Assembly: GCA_038496445.1 (NCBI GenBank)
Contig: JALMLS010000093.1
Span: 1 to 64,000, forward strand
Source: Trichosphaerium sp. ATCC 40318
Taxonomy: Eukaryota; Protista; Tubulinea
DNA length: 64,000 nucleotides
Direction of reading: 5' to 3'
Each line of letters begins with the position of its first letter. Positions within the stretch are counted from its first letter, which is position 1. Of the stretch, positions 20,970-61,236 are shown piece by piece. The notes under the pieces were generated by a model. That model was given only the letters and a program-made list of their open reading frames with translations, had not been told where the DNA came from and searched no databases. Made by a program: the position numbers and the translations under genes.

Positions 20970-21811
20970 TTGTATAACCTGCACTTTTTTGCCTGTGTAG
21001 GCATCAACAATGGGCTGTGTAGTTTTAAAAGCCCAATTATCTAATCACCATATATCATCTTTATTTAAATAAAGTTATTTTTATCACGTGACGTAGGATT
21101 GGCTTTCTATTGCCATATCCAGTTCATTCTAGCTATTGTGCATGCTGAATAAGGTACTTTCATCAGTTAAGTAAAATATCGGCTGCTCTACAACTTACGT
21201 ATACGTATGTATCAGAATAAAGCACTCAAAGATGTACATGGCACTTGATGGAACATTTTGAAAAGTGGCTTAACGTAGACAATACATTTAACAGACGGCA
21301 GTTCCTAACAGATGAGGAATCAAATCACATACTAATACCAACTCTTATCACATGGTTTTCAATAGTAAGCAAAGGGTTGAAACTCTGTATTTGCGGTAAT
21401 GCCAAGATGAAGGTTTGAAAACCTGGTAAATCTGTAGGAGCTTAGTTATCTATTCTCATACTAACAATAACTAAAGATTGCTTAAAACTCCTTGCCTAAA
21501 AAGGTTTTTTTTGGCAAATACAGCCTTACTGACGAGGATGTTGCTGAACATTCCACAACTCCATTTTTATTTCGTACATACTTTAGCGAGTGAAAGCGTT
21601 TACAGTGACTGTACCAGCCACTTGGTTTTTTCTTTCAACAACGGAACTCGCCTAGTACAATAAGCCAATAAAATTATTAATTAAATAACTTTTTTTATTT
21701 GTCGTTGTTGCACATTGCTCATTTTTTGCACCTAGGAGCAAAAAAAACGTTAAAACGCTTATTTAATCGCTCATCTAAATTACTAAGTGTACTAGCTGAA
21801 AAAATAATAAA

Positions 21812-22146
21812 TCTGTTTGATACACGTTTTGCGAAACAAAACGTCAGCGTAACGGTTTTCATACGTTAGATAGGTTGCACAAGGCTTTGTTGGCGTTTTT
21901 AGATGTGCATTATCCATATTTGAGTATTTTAAGTGGATATTTAAGTGAATTGTATCGACAATACAACCAGAAAACAGAAGTTATCGTTTGGTAGCATGTT
22001 TTGCGAACCAAAACATCGCCAATAAGGTTTCCATGCGTGTAAATAGCCATCACAAGCCTTTGTGAGCGTTTTGAAATGTGCATTATCCATTTTTGAAGTA
22101 TTAAAATAGAATTTTCAGTGAAGTGTATCCCACAATTTATTTCTGG
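21812..22146 (+). repeat. Two tandem ~173-bp units upstream of ncRNA-A (shared with 59203-59539)
   Basis: atgtgcattatccat recurs at 21903 and 22076 (period 173). A long block (tatccatatttgagtattt.aagtggatattt.agtgaa.tgtatcgacaatacaaccagaaaacagaagttatcg) is nearly identical to the 59.3 kb copy. Confidence 0.9.
22128..22135 (+). promoter_or_regulatory. DUSE/USE-like element TCCCACAA, 64 nt upstream of ncRNA-A
   Basis: Near-identical motif and the same spacing as the element before U6. Confidence 0.7.
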
Positions 22147-22191
22147 ACAGAATCTTGGTGTACAAAAGTAAAAAAAAATGTATTATCAAAT

Positions 22192-22440
22192 GAGACGGCG
22201 AGTGGTCTCCGCCAATTACCTACTACTTATTCACACTGGGGTAGGTCGGACTTTATTCCAGAGGTCTGGGGATGACTTCCCGGACAGGCATTCATTGGGC
22301 TGTTACCTTGAGTCAGGGTATTTAATCGGTATAGTAAAATTGTAAATCCAGATGCAGCACGTTCTAGGGTAGAACTAAAACCAACGATACGTCAAAGTAA
22401 GGGCTTCCGTGACACCGAAGTAATCCGCCTTGCTTTTTTT
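22192..22440 (+). ncRNA. Unassigned structured ~250-nt Pol III-type RNA, copy A
   Basis: USE at -64, GC-richer structured body, T7 terminator; helices covary with the copy at 59582-59839. Confidence 0.75.
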
Positions 22441-22460
22441 GTGATTTTGATGTTACTGTT

Positions 22461-23666
22461 ATGGTATTCCGTTTGTTGGATAAGTCGAGAGACTTCAGTT
22501 TTTTCAACTTGAGCTGTTTGTGCAGTTGCATAGAATTACTTTTTTTTTGTTACACTGTGTACTACTTTTTGTTCCGGAAGTCTTATCTATCACCACACTT
22601 TTATCAAAGCCGAATTGAAAAGATTCTTGCCCTACTTTCAACGACAGAGTGGCTTGCGTACTTACTCTACGCGCAATAAGAGCTCACAGTAAGTATTGGG
22701 GTAGTTTCAGGTAAATACCATTTGGACGAACCGCTTTCTTTACCACCAAAAAAAAATGATTTTGGTACGCTAGGAGTAGGCCTAGACGATGCAAACTACT
22801 ACAAATGTAAACAAAGTACTTATATAATTTAGAAATTATCACATAGGTGGAAAAGGACAAAGTGCGAAGACCTGCGTATATTTGGCACACAGGTACATGT
22901 TACTTTTTTTTGAACCCAACCTGTTGGTTTTAACTAAGGTTTTTAAAGGCAATAGGAGCATAACGTATATAGCACAGATGCCTGCCAAGTTTGTTAATTA
23001 CCTGGTAACAAAGATGCTGTTTAAAGCATCCCACCCTGATTTTTGTTGGTTCACGTGGAACAAGTCTCCAATAATACTCCATGCCGTCCCTGTTGAACAA
23101 TTTAAACACAAGTATTGTTATTGTATGTACTCTGTCTAATATCTTGTCCAGTGACTTGCACCGTTATCTCAAAAGAGTATAAAAAAATGTATCTATCGGA
23201 ATGCTGTCTAAAGCAAGCTCGCCGGCTTGCTAAGATGCCAAACCTTGTTTATAAACAAGGTCTACTGGTAGCGAGCTTTGAAGCAATGCTACATATTGGC
23301 ACTGTGGCACTGTATAGACGAGATGTCTCAATTGAAGACCTGTATAAGAACTTGGTTAGTTTAGAAGAATTTGTAGATAGACATTCGTCTATCGACCTGT
23401 ATATTGCGCCTTTGTTCTTCAGACAAGGTGATACGTTCACTCTTGGTGCTGTGATTGACTCTTCGTTCATGCTTCAAATCTTCAGAGCGAATGCGAAGCA
23501 GGTTATACAATGGAAGAAACGAGACTCCAAGAAAGCCAACTCCAAGAAAAGCAGCTCCAATAACAAAAAGGAAAACAATAACAAGCGGTTTTTGTACTAT
23601 CAGAAAGTATTGGCCAAGATGCACTATGTTTCGGCCACATTCAGTTGTATGATACTAGGTGAATAG
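22461..23666 (+). CDS. Uncharacterised protein with basic C-terminal tail, paralog of 60095-61236; 5' end unresolved and possibly degenerate
   Basis: RRPAYIW / IAQMPAKFVNYLVTKMLFK..DFCWFTW / QARRLAKMPNL / FEAMLHIGTVALY / LGAVIDSSFMLQI align with the 60-61 kb gene. There is a TAA at 22677-22679 in the putative first exon. Confidence 0.65.
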
Positions 23667-24932
23667 CACTTGGATTAATAGGTACAAGCGAAATATTTGC
23701 TCATGACGAGAAAGCCTGTGTAAGTTTAGGATTTGAAATAACACTATTTTTTTTTAGTGCTAAGCCTGATTTTTAGGGGTGGTTTGTGAGCATAGGTAGC
23801 CTTGTGCAACTCTGCAAGCTATAAGATTAGTATTATCGAGTACTTCGGATGAGCATAAAGTCACGTGCGTGCTACAAATCGAGTTGTCTTTTAAAAAGTA
23901 GGCCTAGCGCTAAATACAATAGCGTTATTTCAAGTCAAATCCTTAGTATTTTGTGTCTATCGGAGTTTACAATGGCGCAAATGTACTCTCGAACGAGCAT
24001 GTTTTAAGCTACTGCTGCACGCTACAGCGTTAACATACTTCTATGTAGAGAAAACGCACGCACAGCACCATTCACTAGCTTCTTGTGACATAAGAATCCC
24101 TTTCCGTTTGTACATTGCCTTCACTGTTTTATTCCGCTGTTATTTGTAAACGTTTATTGAGGTTAGCTTCGAGCAAGCCCGCGATCCAGTAGTTTTGTAG
24201 TACATTTTATCGCGTCAACCTCTGCTAATACCTCCGCTCCTAGAGACGATGTTTTACGGACTCCTAACTATTACAACTCAGAACAAACAAAACGGCGTTC
24301 TACAAATTTTTTTGCCCATCTACTCGCCAGTGATAGGAGAAAAACGTCACTTTGAACTGTTTTAATACTAATGTGCTAGAAACGGACTATTTTCAGCAAA
24401 CTTGAACATCACTACAACTCTGAGAAACACGAAACAGATCGCGGACGCGTACATTGATTGTATTAATGTTGACGTACGTATTTACGGCATTCGCGACTGG
24501 TTTGCATAAAAACTGCAAATTCTGCAGGCGAACAGTTTTGTGCATTGAATATACTCATAATATAGCATCGCCAAGTGCCTGCATAAGCTACGATTCTATT
24601 AACGGTATGTGGTCTTTAAAAAAAGAAAAACGAGTGATAACCGTGAAGGTATTCTCACAAAGTTACAGCGGAGACAGTAAAAATCTTCGAAAACTCGTAC
24701 CAACGCCAAACGCTTTGAATTTTCTCGCGGAATTTCTATGAAATCTAATAAAAACTTTCAACCGTTTTTCTCTATTTAGTAACGTATATTGGCGCGATCG
24801 CTTTACATTACGCCGAAAGCAATACTGTTGTTCACTATTGCACCACGTGGTAAACAATTTGTTGACTCTGTAGTGACTTATAGAGAAAAAGTACACAAAG
24901 TCAAAAAAATCATTATTACAAAAACATCACCA

Positions 24933-31330: not shown

Positions 31331-32355
31331 TTACACTAATATCATCTTTTTGAGTTGCAGCTTCGGCGGACAATAATCTTGTATGGTATGGCAAACGTTG
31401 AGAGTGGCGAGAACAGCACTATCCGTGACAAACTTGGCATCAGCCAAACCAGCCTTAATAAAGACCTAGCGTAGAATAAAGGGTAAGATATTGATTAACA
31501 AGATACTACTGAGCCTACCTTGGCAAGCGTAGGATTGGTTGTTGGAGGATATTTTCTGATGGCCTTGGCAGTTTCTTGGGCTAGTCCTTGTACTAGCGTA
31601 ATCTTGGTTTTCAGATGGCTGATATCTAGCGACAACGTAGCAATTTCTCCTTTTAACATAAAGCACGTGGGTATAGCTTTGCAAAAGCCCATATCTTGTT
31701 GTAAATCATGTAGGTGTTCGATTGTATTTTCCCATTTCTCTTTACAAGAGGTGTTGTTGCAAGTTGCAAGTTGCTCTTCTGCAAGTGAGATTTCATCAAG
31801 TAGGTCTTTCGGCGAAACGACAAACCTGCAACGCCGTTCCAAATCATCGTAAAACTGCTGATAGAGGTGGCCAAGACCTACCATTACACCCCTTTGAGCA
31901 TTTGTGAAGGCTTCGTCCAAGACTACTGCAGAAGCATTGATTTTCGCTATAATTTGTTGGTATTGTTGTAACGTGGCTGTAGTGTTGTTTTTCTCGTATT
32001 CCACGAGCAACTGCAACAATTTGTTCGCTTTTGCAGTTGTAGAGTTTGCAAAGTACCAAGCGGCGATCGTGGCGTTCTGCAACACTGAGGTGCGCACTGT
32101 AGCTTTTGTTACGGGCATCTGGTTAATTAAAGAGCTAGCAATTTGAGTGAAATTGGTGCTCTCTAGTTTTACTAGCAACCCTGAAAATTGTTTCGACTGG
32201 TTGCTTGCTTGACGTATGCATTCTTTTGCAAGCGATGTAATATACTCAATATTGCTCATACGGCCTTTGGACATGCATTGGGGACACGTAGGCGGGTTAA
32301 AGTGACATGTCACTGTTAAATAGCATAGTGTTAGTAGTAGCGCGTGTCTGATCAT
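31331..32355 (-). CDS. Secreted alpha-helical/coiled-coil protein
   Basis: Signal peptide MIRHALLLTLCYLTVTC, one long helical exon with paired Cys and N-glycosylation sequons, and one intron near the 3' end. Confidence 0.7.
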
Positions 32356-32775
32356 GCTTGTGAGTGTTGTGTAAGTACAAGTTTTGGACAAGAATAGTCT
32401 TAAGAAATTATTCCAGAAATTTACTAGTATTCTCAATTTCCGCGCACATAACGATTCACTACGAAAATCGTAGCTTCAGATAACTGCTTGTGTATCGTGG
32501 AGAGAACTTAGAGTATCTGAAGCGAACGTATAGGCTCAGTAAAGGTGATACAGTCTCCAGTACAACGTCGCGTTGTGGGAATTTGAACAATGTAACATCC
32601 TGGTCAATTCCGCAAGACCGAAGCTGTCACGTACTATCGGCCCTATGACCAAACGGTAATATTTTCTATGTCTTTCAAGAACAATACAAGTGTGTTAGGT
32701 GACTTACTTTAATTGTTTTTTACTTTACACTTTTTTTGGTGACCACGTGTTTATCAATTTAATAAAATCGCGTCT

Positions 32776-46355: not shown

Positions 46356-47690
46356 TTAGTACCTGATAGTTATACCTTTTAGGGTTGATAACTCTTTCCT
46401 TTTTATTTGCGTAGCACCATCAATCTCCAATCTTTTAATTTCAGGTGTTAAATATTGGATTCCTTCAAATGAGATGTTGGTACAGTAAGAAGCAACAAGA
46501 GTATGAACACCCTTTAAAGCTTTGATTCCTTCATCTGTTACATCTGTACGACTCAAATATATAGTATGAACGCCTGCTAGTTCCTTTATACCTTCATCTG
46601 TCACTGCACAATGCCAAAGGTTAATACGGTATACACCTTTCAATGCTTTTATGCCTTCATCTGTAACTGGTGTACTCGAAAGGTTTATAGTATGCACACC
46701 GGCAAGCTCTTTGATACCTTCATCGGTGACCTTTGTTTGAGATAGGTTGATTTCATGGACACCTCTTAATGCTTTTATACCTTTATCAGTAACAGCAGTA
46801 TAGCTCAGGTTAATTGTATGAACACCAGCGAGTTCAATTATCCCTTTATCCGTAACATTGTGACATTCTGACAAGTTGATAGTATGAACGCCTTTTAAAG
46901 CTTGTAAACCCTTATCTGTAACAGTGGTGTTGATGAGCTTTAACGTGTGAACTCCAGCAAGTGATGCAATGCCTTTATCTGATACATTTGTATCACTCAA
47001 GTTTATTGTATGCACTCCTTTCAGTGCTTTAATTCCATCATCAGTAACACCACATCCACTAAGGTCAATATCATAAACACCTCTAAGAGCCTTTATACCT
47101 TCATCTGTTATACCGAGACAACTATTTATATCTATAGTATGTACACCAGCAAGCTCTTTGATACCTTCATCTGTCACAGTTGTAACAGAAAGGTTTATTT
47201 TATGTACACCTTTTAGTGCTTTAATGTCTTCATCATTGATAACAGCCCATCCAAGATTAATAGTGTGAACACCAGCTAGTGCTTTGATATTATTGCCACA
47301 AATGCCATAACAATTAATGTAGGTGTTTTTAAGCAAAGGGCTCTTTTCAAGGAGCTTAACCAGAGCCCGAACATAAGTGCAGGTATCCACACGTATTACG
47401 CCATATCCAACGTGTTTTTGTACAAGTTCGTAGATGTAGTGGCAACTATGAGCGATATGAAGCGTGTAGCTGCAGAAACGAAGCATATAAACGATAACTT
47501 CTGGTGGCATTGTCACGAGACATAGTTCTTCGCTTCTAATGCGATTAATAAGGATTTGAGTATATTAACGCACGATCTGTCTTTAAGAGACTGACGCGAA
47601 TCCAAAATTGTGTCCATGAGAAGGTGCTGGAGCTATTTGTTTGAAAATGATGATGTCAAATTCAGTCTCAGTACTTTCTTTGAATAGCAT
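46356..47690 (-). CDS. F-box-like + leucine-rich repeat protein (about twelve 24-aa repeats)
   Basis: LVTMPPEVIVYMLRF, then repeats of GVHTINLSxTxVTDEGIKxL in one ~1.2-kb exon; probably a single 5' intron. Confidence 0.9.
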
Positions 47691-58925: not shown

Positions 58926-59202
58926 TAATTAATTAAAGCCGTAAATGTACAGTGCAAAACCGAAATGTCCATAAAAACATTATAATCTAGTTTCTTTGCC
59001 GTCGCTTAGCATTCTTTTACCGACCATCATTGAGCTGGCCACTTATTAGGAAAGAAAGACGTCATATAGCGTTTTTCGGAATAAACGCCCAAAGCATCTT
59101 TGAGGATAATGTTAAAGACGTAAACGTGCGTGTAGTTGCGGCCGCGTTTGTGAGAGTAAAGTAGAATATCTTTAAAAAACCTCTGCGCGAAAAAAGGTAC
59201 TA

Positions 59203-59539
59203 GTCGTTTGGAAGCACGTTTCGCGAACCAAAACCACGCCAAAACGCTTCTCATACACGAGTATAACCAGAACAACGCTCTGTACGTGTTTTGAAATGTG
59301 CATTATCCATATTTGAGTATTTCAAGTGGATATTTCAGTGAAGTGTATCGACAATACAACCAGAAAACAGAAGTTATCGCTTGGTAACATGTTTTGCAAA
59401 CCAAAACATCACTGGATCGGCTTCCACGTATGTAAATAGCTATCACAAGCCTTTGCGAGCATTTTGAAATGTGCATTATCCATATTTGAGTATTTTAAGT
59501 GGATATTTCAGTGAAGTGTATCCCACAATTTATTTCTGG
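59203..59539 (+). repeat. Two tandem ~173-bp units upstream of ncRNA-B (shared with 21812-22146)
   Basis: atgtgcattatccat at 59296 and 59469 (period 173); near-identical to the 21.8-22.1 kb block. Confidence 0.9.
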
Positions 59540-59560
59540 GAAGAATTACGCTCTATAAAA
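59521..59560 (+). promoter_or_regulatory. DUSE/USE-like TCCCACAA plus TATAAAA box of ncRNA-B
   Basis: TCCCACAA at 59521-59528 and TATAAAA at 59554-59560, a type-3 Pol III promoter layout matching the U6 spacing. Confidence 0.75.
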
Positions 59561-59581
59561 CAAAACGAATTGCAACTTTTA

Positions 59582-59839
59582 GTAGCCTGCGATTCATCAC
59601 GTATAGAGCCTGTTACTATTAATTCAAGGACAGGCAGGACACTTCCAGCAGCTTCGGTTTGATGCCCGAGGCAGCCCTCATAGCAGCTGTTACCTTCGTT
59701 ACGGTACTTGATCTGGTCATCTAAAAGTAATTCCAGATACAGCACTTTCTAGTAGTAGAAAGAAAAGCATGAGACGCCTAGTTAGTATGGACTCTCGTAA
59801 CAAAGGGGTACACTTGCACCGTGCTAATGACTTTTTTTT
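59582..59839 (+). ncRNA. Unassigned structured ~255-nt Pol III-type RNA, copy B
   Basis: USE + TATA upstream, T8 terminator, helices shared with copy A with compensatory substitutions. Confidence 0.75.
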
Positions 59840-60094: not shown

Positions 60095-61236
60095 TTACTT
60101 TTTATTACGAAGTCCTTTGCCTTTATGTTTGTTGTTTTTGTTTCTCTTTGGAGAGCTAAAGTTCTCGCTCTTTTTCCAATTCCCTTCCTTCTTTACAATT
60201 ACTTTCTTCTTCACGCGATAACGTTTCATCCATTGTTTGGATTGTTTTCGATCGGCTTCTAGGATCTCCAGCATGAACGAAGACTCAACAACAACACCAA
60301 GATTGAACGTAAAGTGACCTTCCTTCCTGAAGAAAAAAGGCATTATATTTGGATCACGTGCTGAGTGTTTGATAACGACTTTTTCAAGCTCTAGCAATGT
60401 CTTGAACATATGTTGAATTTCTACATCCTGCTGGAACAGTGCGATTCTACCGATACCAAGCATAGACTCGAAATCAGAAACCAAGAAATCGCCTTTTTTA
60501 GTAAGCGTTGGAGCTCTTGACAAGGCACGGGCCTGAGGCAAAAAACACCATTTGTTGTAAGAAGCTGTCAGCTCAGTTTCATCATCTGAACATTCAAATC
60601 TGTATATCCAAGTATCACCTAGTTTTACGCCTATAGAAAGGTTAGAGTGGTTAAGGCAATGAATGAAAAACAGAAAGGTTAAGCCACGTACGATTGAAGA
60701 GCACAGGAGGTACAAAGGCATTTAGTCTGAAGCCGTTGACGTCTAGGAATTGCGGTAACTGCCAATAGAACCAGCAGTCATCACCGTTAGGTATCTTTAA
60801 CATCAGCCTGGTGATAAAATATTCGATGAACTTGGGAGGGACTTGAGAAATCGAACGAATAAGTAAGTGTCCTAAAATAGAATTATCGCATATATTCGGT
60901 TGTTCTAGCAAAAAAAAAAGTTTGTACGTACTCACAGGCCAGCAATGAGCAGGTCTGGTTACGTCGCCGGTACCCCAGATTCGAACACGAATGCCTAAGT
61001 AGTAGTGATTAGCTAGCGTTCTCGTAGTAGAGGTTAAAGTACTTACGTTGCTCGTTTCCTTTTTCGATAGGTAATTCTTCGTTGATAGTTTCGTTTAGTA
61101 GCTTGCATACTTGACCAGCGAAAGCTCTTACGTTCAAAAACCGAAGAAGGTAAACTAGGACAGTTCTTGGCATGCCCAAGAGGCTGTATTGCTGATAGTG
61201 GCGTTCAATAATCGGTCTCTTCTGTTTAGAGAGCAT
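60095..61236 (-). CDS. F-box protein with uncharacterised C-terminal domain and Lys-rich tail; paralog of 22461-23666
   Basis: SLLGMPRTVLVYLLRFLNV...VCKLL fits the F-box consensus; the downstream exons align with the 22.9-23.6 kb gene. Confidence 0.8.

Follow-up and report, generated by a model that had tools for sequence, protein, structure and literature searches.

A structured, uncatalogued RNA family in U6-type genes and its adjacency to paralogous protein genes in Trichosphaerium sp. ATCC 40318

Within the 64,000-nt stretch of Trichosphaerium sp. ATCC 40318 DNA analysed here (the window) we identified two copies, A and B, of a real, structured and uncatalogued RNA family, each encoded by a U6-type gene and each adjacent to a member of one protein family. 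The RNA family itself is well supported. For its neighborhood we favor, as the probable reading, a relic of an old local duplication, in which an uncatalogued Pol III RNA gene and a protein gene, independent of each other but neighbors, would have been copied together; as the evidence stands, ordinary duplication history accounts for the adjacency. The initial annotation had described a module of tandem repeat, novel ncRNA and orphan-family gene, and all three parts are real. The block at 21790–22430 aligns to that at 59190–59800 with 74% identity over 628 nt (alignment within the 64-kb window). The two blocks lie 37 kb apart on one scaffold, and each comprises two 173-nt units, a U6-type promoter and an RNA of ~250 nt.

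The upstream units of both loci are 173 nt long and located on the plus strand, A1 at 21795–21967 and A2 at 21968–22140, B1 at 59188–59360 and B2 at 59361–59533. Because each unit terminates in a DUSE-like box, which is intact in the proximal unit (in B2 at 59519–59531) and degenerate in the distal unit, the units are read as a duplicated promoter region, and this region would probably act as an enhancer. Corresponding units of the two loci are more similar (A1/B1 79%, A2/B2 87%) than units within a block (A1/A2 76%, B1/B2 74%), so that the doubling must be older than the split between A and B. For the units themselves no RNA folding signal was obtained (z from -1.4 to 0). Human U6 has a positioned nucleosome that joins distal and proximal promoter elements (PMC11346459), and the 173-nt spacing, close to one nucleosome repeat, may be seen as a parallel, by analogy only. 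Neither a third unit nor a third RNA was found within the window with a covariance model and nhmmer, and a DNA pattern search for the upstream unit found no copy in metagenome or viral contigs. Run X1 holds at least two further unit versions that are neither A nor B, and the upstream repeat is therefore probably not specific to the module of RNA and protein gene. The contigs of this run, apparently a cDNA library, span 21687–22153 in several unit versions, which reflects either carried-over genomic DNA or a transcribed upstream region. Upstream of A1 a stretch of ~780 nt (21010–21790) is devoid of long ORFs; two look-alikes of the RNA core at 21146–21177 and 21760–21786 were not significant.

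Divergence between A and B is very unequal. The unit junction (21912–22001, and the matching part of 59300–59400) is 94–96% identical, the RNA 56–74% by alignment window, and third codon positions of the protein genes 35–41%; with rates so different between the parts, the whole is therefore not one recently moved unit. The identity of the junction needs either strong constraint or recent gene conversion. One explanation would be that promoter cassette and RNA form a mobile or converting unit, spread or homogenised genome-wide, which inserted once next to the protein gene, at the cost of exon 1 of gene a, and was later duplicated together with it. Such a unit would account for a junction that is conserved while all else is far more diverged, for the further cassette versions in run X1 and for the position of the RNA gene in place of the missing exon. 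We nevertheless consider it unlikely. Neither target duplication nor terminal repeat was seen; selection acts on the structure of the RNA, and its promoter is external, of a kind that would not travel with a SINE. Simple constraint on the sites where factors bind may also account for the high identity of the junction.

RNA copy A is located at 22192–22440 on the plus strand (249 nt including a T7 terminator at 22434–22440) and copy B at 59585–59839 on the same strand (~255 nt including a T8 terminator at 59832–59839); the 3' ends are predicted from these T-runs, and 59585 is the probable start of B, as judged from promoter spacing. In both copies the box TATCCCACAATTT is found at -66 (22126–22138, plus strand, in A), a position and type that fit the DUSE element, which precedes the RNA genes of dictyostelids by ~60 nt (PMC7919456). 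A TATA box follows at -31, on the plus strand in both cases, as TATAAAA in B (59554–59560) and as the variant TACAAAA in A (22161–22167). The genes thus share with U6-type Pol III genes (type 3, external promoter) a CCC-containing box ~63 nt upstream, a TATA box at about -31, the T-run end and the lack of an internal A/B pair. Their offsets equal those of the window's own U6 gene, which carries a version of the box with two mismatches at -65, but unlike A and B this U6 gene has no doubled 173-nt units. The U6 snRNA gene lies at 13029–13136 (Rfam 104.8 bits), with a DUSE-like box and without 173-nt units. By the same arrangement, the external DUSE and TATA boxes would recruit Pol III as for U6, and transcription would end in the T run.

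Transcription is documented for copy A: two contigs of run X2 match 22192–22333 without a difference. The letters that precede 22192 in these contigs are those of what we take to be the template-switch adapter of the SMART cDNA kit; because the adapter directly precedes this position, the 5' end of RNA A is 22192 and the RNA is read from the plus strand. Runs X1 and X2 belong to one study, probably of the source strain, and their contigs were compared with locus A. The published genome of this strain was accompanied by Takara v4 low-input single-cell transcriptomes (PMC10521059).

The bodies of RNA A and B are 70% identical (167/239) with an alignment score of 189.5, compared to 65.7 ± 9.4 for shuffled sequences, hence ~13 standard deviations above shuffles. 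A shared structure built by hand comprises 61 pairs in 11 helices, of which 41 pairs are the same in A and B, 12 differ on both sides, seven differ on one side and one is broken, whereas random placement of equally many changes breaks 19 ± 2.7 pairs; as the helices were picked from the same two sequences, this comparison is biased in favor of the structure. If the alignment is left unedited, 48 pairs stay in register; all of these are paired and nine changed on both sides, a result matched by 4 of 500 shuffles, while slid controls pair at 31–45%. An independent check is provided by a third copy, A', found on contig X1-4 of run X1 (822 nt, depth 7), which has seven differences from RNA A in 250 nt (97% identity). 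Among the six differences listed, four fall into stems, where they keep or repair pairs, and two into a loop; one of the stem differences repairs the single broken pair of RNA A. Folding z-scores of the single sequences are flat (-0.16 and -0.53), so the structure rests on covariation and not on stability. The RNA fold is, judged by these substitution patterns, under selection. As covariation shows, the RNA folds into four hairpins at its 5' side, a domain of several helices in the center and one hairpin at its 3' side. The central loop (22312–22315) has two candidate partners, the 3' hairpin loop, with four Watson-Crick pairs of which one shows a compensatory change, and the loop of the fourth hairpin, with five pairs, one compensatory and two wobbles; the two sequences compared suggest that the fold may be closed by such a loop-loop contact. 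Together, the 12 compensatory changes, the mapped 5' end and the candidate contact make a testable model. Few structured RNA families are known from Amoebozoa, and the present one joins them with good support.

The initial annotation had called the RNA novel, and so it appears, as no Rfam family matched; the RNA is structured, and copy A is transcribed. At the gathering score U6 alone was matched in the window, not RNA A or B, and at E ≤ 10 the chance-level matches lie outside the two RNA bodies. RNase P, RNase MRP, SRP, telomerase and 7SK RNAs resemble A and B in size, in folding into several helices and in the type of gene (Pol III), but differ in that A and B have no Rfam match and share no signature motifs with them. 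For the CR-I and CR-V strands that form P4 in RNase P and MRP no motif common to A and B was found, a conserved GAUC of the 7SK type is not shared by the two copies, and neither holds a telomerase template of the TTAGGG type (such a repeat being assumed; that of the host may differ). Sm site, C box and D box are absent from both RNAs, and the fold is not one of two hairpins as in H/ACA RNAs. By-eye likenesses to a TPP riboswitch, SRP helix 8, the P4 of RNase P/MRP, an IGR IRES and the twister and HDV ribozymes were rejected, as the likeness was confined to one copy or a partner motif was missing. A close parallel is given by the dictyostelid Class I RNAs (PMC7919456), which are likewise lineage-specific, multi-copy and DUSE-driven amoebozoan RNAs with a T run downstream. 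These RNAs, however, are much shorter, have a single stem and carry an 11-nt motif that is absent from RNA A and B, which are ~250 nt long with 11 helices. A search of metagenome and viral contigs with the RNA pattern yielded nothing beyond one 30-nt match to the core pattern (contig L002, 2984–3013), which has no model match and is put down to chance. In the literature we found no paper on orphan U6-type RNA genes in Trichosphaerium. The RNA would most likely be a trans-acting, protein-binding scaffold.

The protein gene next to copy A, gene a, lies on the plus strand. Its first exon with family homology is located at 22847–22892, the middle exon at 22949–23122 and the last exon, which encodes the core domain, a basic stretch and a hydrophobic end, at 23152–23666. 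Gene b is located on the minus strand and consists of exon 1 with an F-box-like pattern (61047–61236), exons 2 (60932–60994) and 3 (60692–60871), and exon 4 (60095–60618) with the core domain and a Lys-rich tail. These four exons give an open frame of 318 codons with clean introns of 52–73 nt. Exons 2–4 of gene a form an open frame of 244 codons, provided that the last intron has 29 nt. This GT-AG intron (23123–23151), with a CTAAT branch-like site, is predicted and required by the frame; it is short for this compact genome, for which a mean intron length of 75 nt and a G+C content of 37.69% have been published (PMC10521059; about 0.37 in the window).

The two proteins had been described as paralogs of about 30% identity; the paralogy holds, but the value was too low. 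The last exons are 43% identical (66/155, E 2e-36), the whole shared part 42% across 213 aligned residues, and the last two introns lie at equivalent places in the same phase. On these comparisons proteins a and b are true paralogs. Since second codon positions are 64–76% and third positions 35–41% identical between them, gene a was long under purifying selection in the past. Lys-rich tails had been ascribed to both: the end of b indeed has 19 K+R among 44 residues, while that of a has 13 among 51, followed by a hydrophobic extension, and does not fit the description. A start of gene a at 22.5 kb is not borne out either. Family homology begins at 22847, and upstream of it there is no homologous start or F-box exon, nor a match above chance to exon 1 of gene b or to that of the related protein P0001 (see below); among 80 splice models for a first exon the best score was 30, compared to a null best of 30.6 ± 4.7. 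The gene of RNA A ends 408 nt before this first homologous exon and thereby occupies the gap where promoter and first exon of gene a would be expected.

Beyond RNA A', contig X1-4 runs on into fragments of the gene that show deletions of 12 nt and 8 nt and, in the last exon, a net loss of 25 nt; the gene is thereby frameshifted, while the RNA is intact. This evidence for A' consists of one contig, which may represent an allele or second haplotype or else a paralog and does not imply a single transcript as origin. At the join, the match to the window breaks off five T into the terminator and resumes, 24 nt further on, toward the decayed gene (22438–22463); Pol III read-through is a possible cause. 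An exact cDNA of gene a was not found in runs X1 and X2, whose contigs show presence only. Run X2 contains an exact RNA A but no gene a, which is weak evidence that gene a is silent.

As the initial annotation stated, the gene is co-directional with the RNA at locus A and convergent at locus B. Inversion chimeras are known in whole-genome-amplified libraries, and the change of orientation might thus be an assembly artefact from amplified nuclei. The Trichosphaerium genome was indeed made with REPLI-g amplification of nuclei (PMC10521059). Contig X1-4, however, independently supports the order of the A type, and gene b is complete at its locus, with four exons and clean introns, so that we judge an artefact very unlikely. 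The upstream neighbors are unrelated, as had been noted: an exon with 3HCDH_N (CRYL1-like) at A and a DDI1-type aspartyl protease at B. Beyond gene b a weak G-patch match was seen.

A search of 1.84 billion representatives found a single relative of the family, P0001 (358 aa, E 1.1e-20), the product of a transcript from Trichosphaerium sp. ATCC 40318, to which a and b are each 32–38% identical; it is either a third paralog of the same genome or an ortholog from a close relative. Searches were run exon by exon, joined frames being used for frame and pairwise checks, and gave no match for the family proteins in Pfam, PHROGs, PDB sequences, a word-index search or viral contigs; Atlas feature matches showed low recognition. 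The N-terminal F-box that had been assigned to the paralog at 61 kb is present as a pattern only. The N-terminus of b matches the start of a leucine-rich repeat gene of the window (tblastn E 0.001), but no Pfam match was obtained at E ≤ 0.5; Atlas F-box clusters at 0.80–0.81 are a lead only. We regard the F-box as plausible, though not significant. A single-exon gene on the minus strand of the window (46359–47510) has an F-box-like start and about eleven leucine-rich repeats of 21 residues.

Structure modelling, which had been suggested for the C-terminal domain, gave a core model with a pLDDT of 67 overall and 75–89 in the second half (a single-sequence AlphaFold model of P0001 with pLDDT 38 was not used). 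Six of the seven best fold matches belong to the HIT/GalT superfamily (DUF4931, CDP-diacylglycerol pyrophosphatase, Apa2, GalT, Cwf19/CwfJ and DcpS), led by 4qvu (Z 6.9, rmsd 5.1, 161 residues aligned) and 2pof (Z 6.5). All Z scores, however, are below 8 and within the range of common arrangements. The likeness to the superfamily is one of fold (weakly, Z ≤ 6.9), whereas the catalytic HxH motif (HxHxH or HxHxQ) is missing from a, b and P0001, and no HIT/GalT sequence or profile match to the family was found. The core may weakly be described as HIT/GalT-like without the catalytic histidines. Our best guess from the model is a non-catalytic adaptor that binds nucleotides or nucleic acids; restricted to Trichosphaerium, it would probably be of the F-box type and might carry a basic, NLS-like tail.

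That the RNA and the protein family came to be neighbors by chance twice has a probability of <1e-5 for family sizes up to 20, which is negligible, so the shared adjacency must be inherited. All three RNA copies seen adjoin the protein family. Both observations could also be explained by a co-inherited pair, an idea put forward in the initial annotation. In the form considered here, the HIT-like core and the basic tail of the protein would bind the neighboring RNA, the b form would link it to an SCF ligase, and selection would keep the linkage. Spliceosome proteins of the Cwf19 type and DcpS, a decapping enzyme, are among the weak fold matches (Z 3.4–4.6) and would suit this model. The inherited adjacency on which the proposal rested thus stands, but the pair is weakened in that shared descent suffices to explain the adjacency, gene a lacks the F-box exon, the third gene copy is frameshifted beside an intact RNA, no exact cDNA of gene a is seen where RNA A is, and both F-box and fold are below significance. 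To our knowledge, eukaryotic RNA-protein partners rarely need linkage. We therefore hold a selected pair to be improbable. Its boldest form, an undescribed eukaryotic RNP made of a linked ~250-nt Pol III RNA and a catalytically dead HIT-fold protein, with an F-box form that couples the RNA to SCF ubiquitination and a central loop that docks on either of two partner loops, is more doubtful still. An RNA-coupled SCF adaptor, if true, would be new. Linked RNA-protein pairs are familiar in bacteria and rare in eukaryotes. Y RNA-Rsr, OLE RNA-OapA, IscB/TnpB/Fanzor-omega RNA and retrons are such linked modules, and in these, as here, a structured RNA gene is found repeatedly beside one protein family. 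The present case differs in that it is known from one genome only, the orientation varies and linked genes decay while the RNA persists; moreover, in contrast to the proteins of the Y RNA-Rsr, IscB/TnpB/Fanzor and retron systems, a and b are no nuclease, RT or TROVE proteins. The adjacency would matter only if it held genome-wide and across species.

The probable reading of a duplication relic is favored by the two copies lying 37 kb apart without common flanks, terminal repeats or target duplication, by the missing homologous first exon of gene a and by the intact RNA A' beside a frameshifted gene. An old local duplication would have copied RNA gene and protein gene together; a later rearrangement would have changed the direction of the gene with respect to that of the RNA and cost copy a its first exon, and in a recent further duplicate, or second haplotype, the RNA would have been kept while the gene decayed. 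Against this reading speak the linkage of three out of three RNA copies, the survival of the adjacency through near-saturation of synonymous sites and an inversion, the 244-codon frame still open in exons 2–4 of gene a, and a HIT-like core and basic tail which, as modelled, would be compatible with RNA binding. The recurrence of the three parts in different surroundings had also raised the idea of a selfish cassette, self-mobile in all three parts, whose protein moves the RNA gene. Neither terminal repeats nor a target-site duplication were found around the module, flanking DNA of A and B showed no convincing homology on either strand, and the protein has no similarity to a transposase, recombinase, RT or nuclease. 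The gene has introns, its orientation differs between the loci, no element ends are recognizable, and copies were not found in viral or metagenome contigs; with both copies 37 kb apart on one scaffold, a selfish cassette is extremely unlikely.

Two further features of the window were recorded. A long exon on the minus strand (31495–32436), for which no homolog was found, encodes a probably secreted helical protein. Right behind gene a, at 23729–23942, lies a MITE-like element with imperfect terminal inverted repeats and TTA at both flanks. Several other copies of it are present in run X1, one ending exactly at 23942, and the element resembles PIF/Harbinger-type MITEs.
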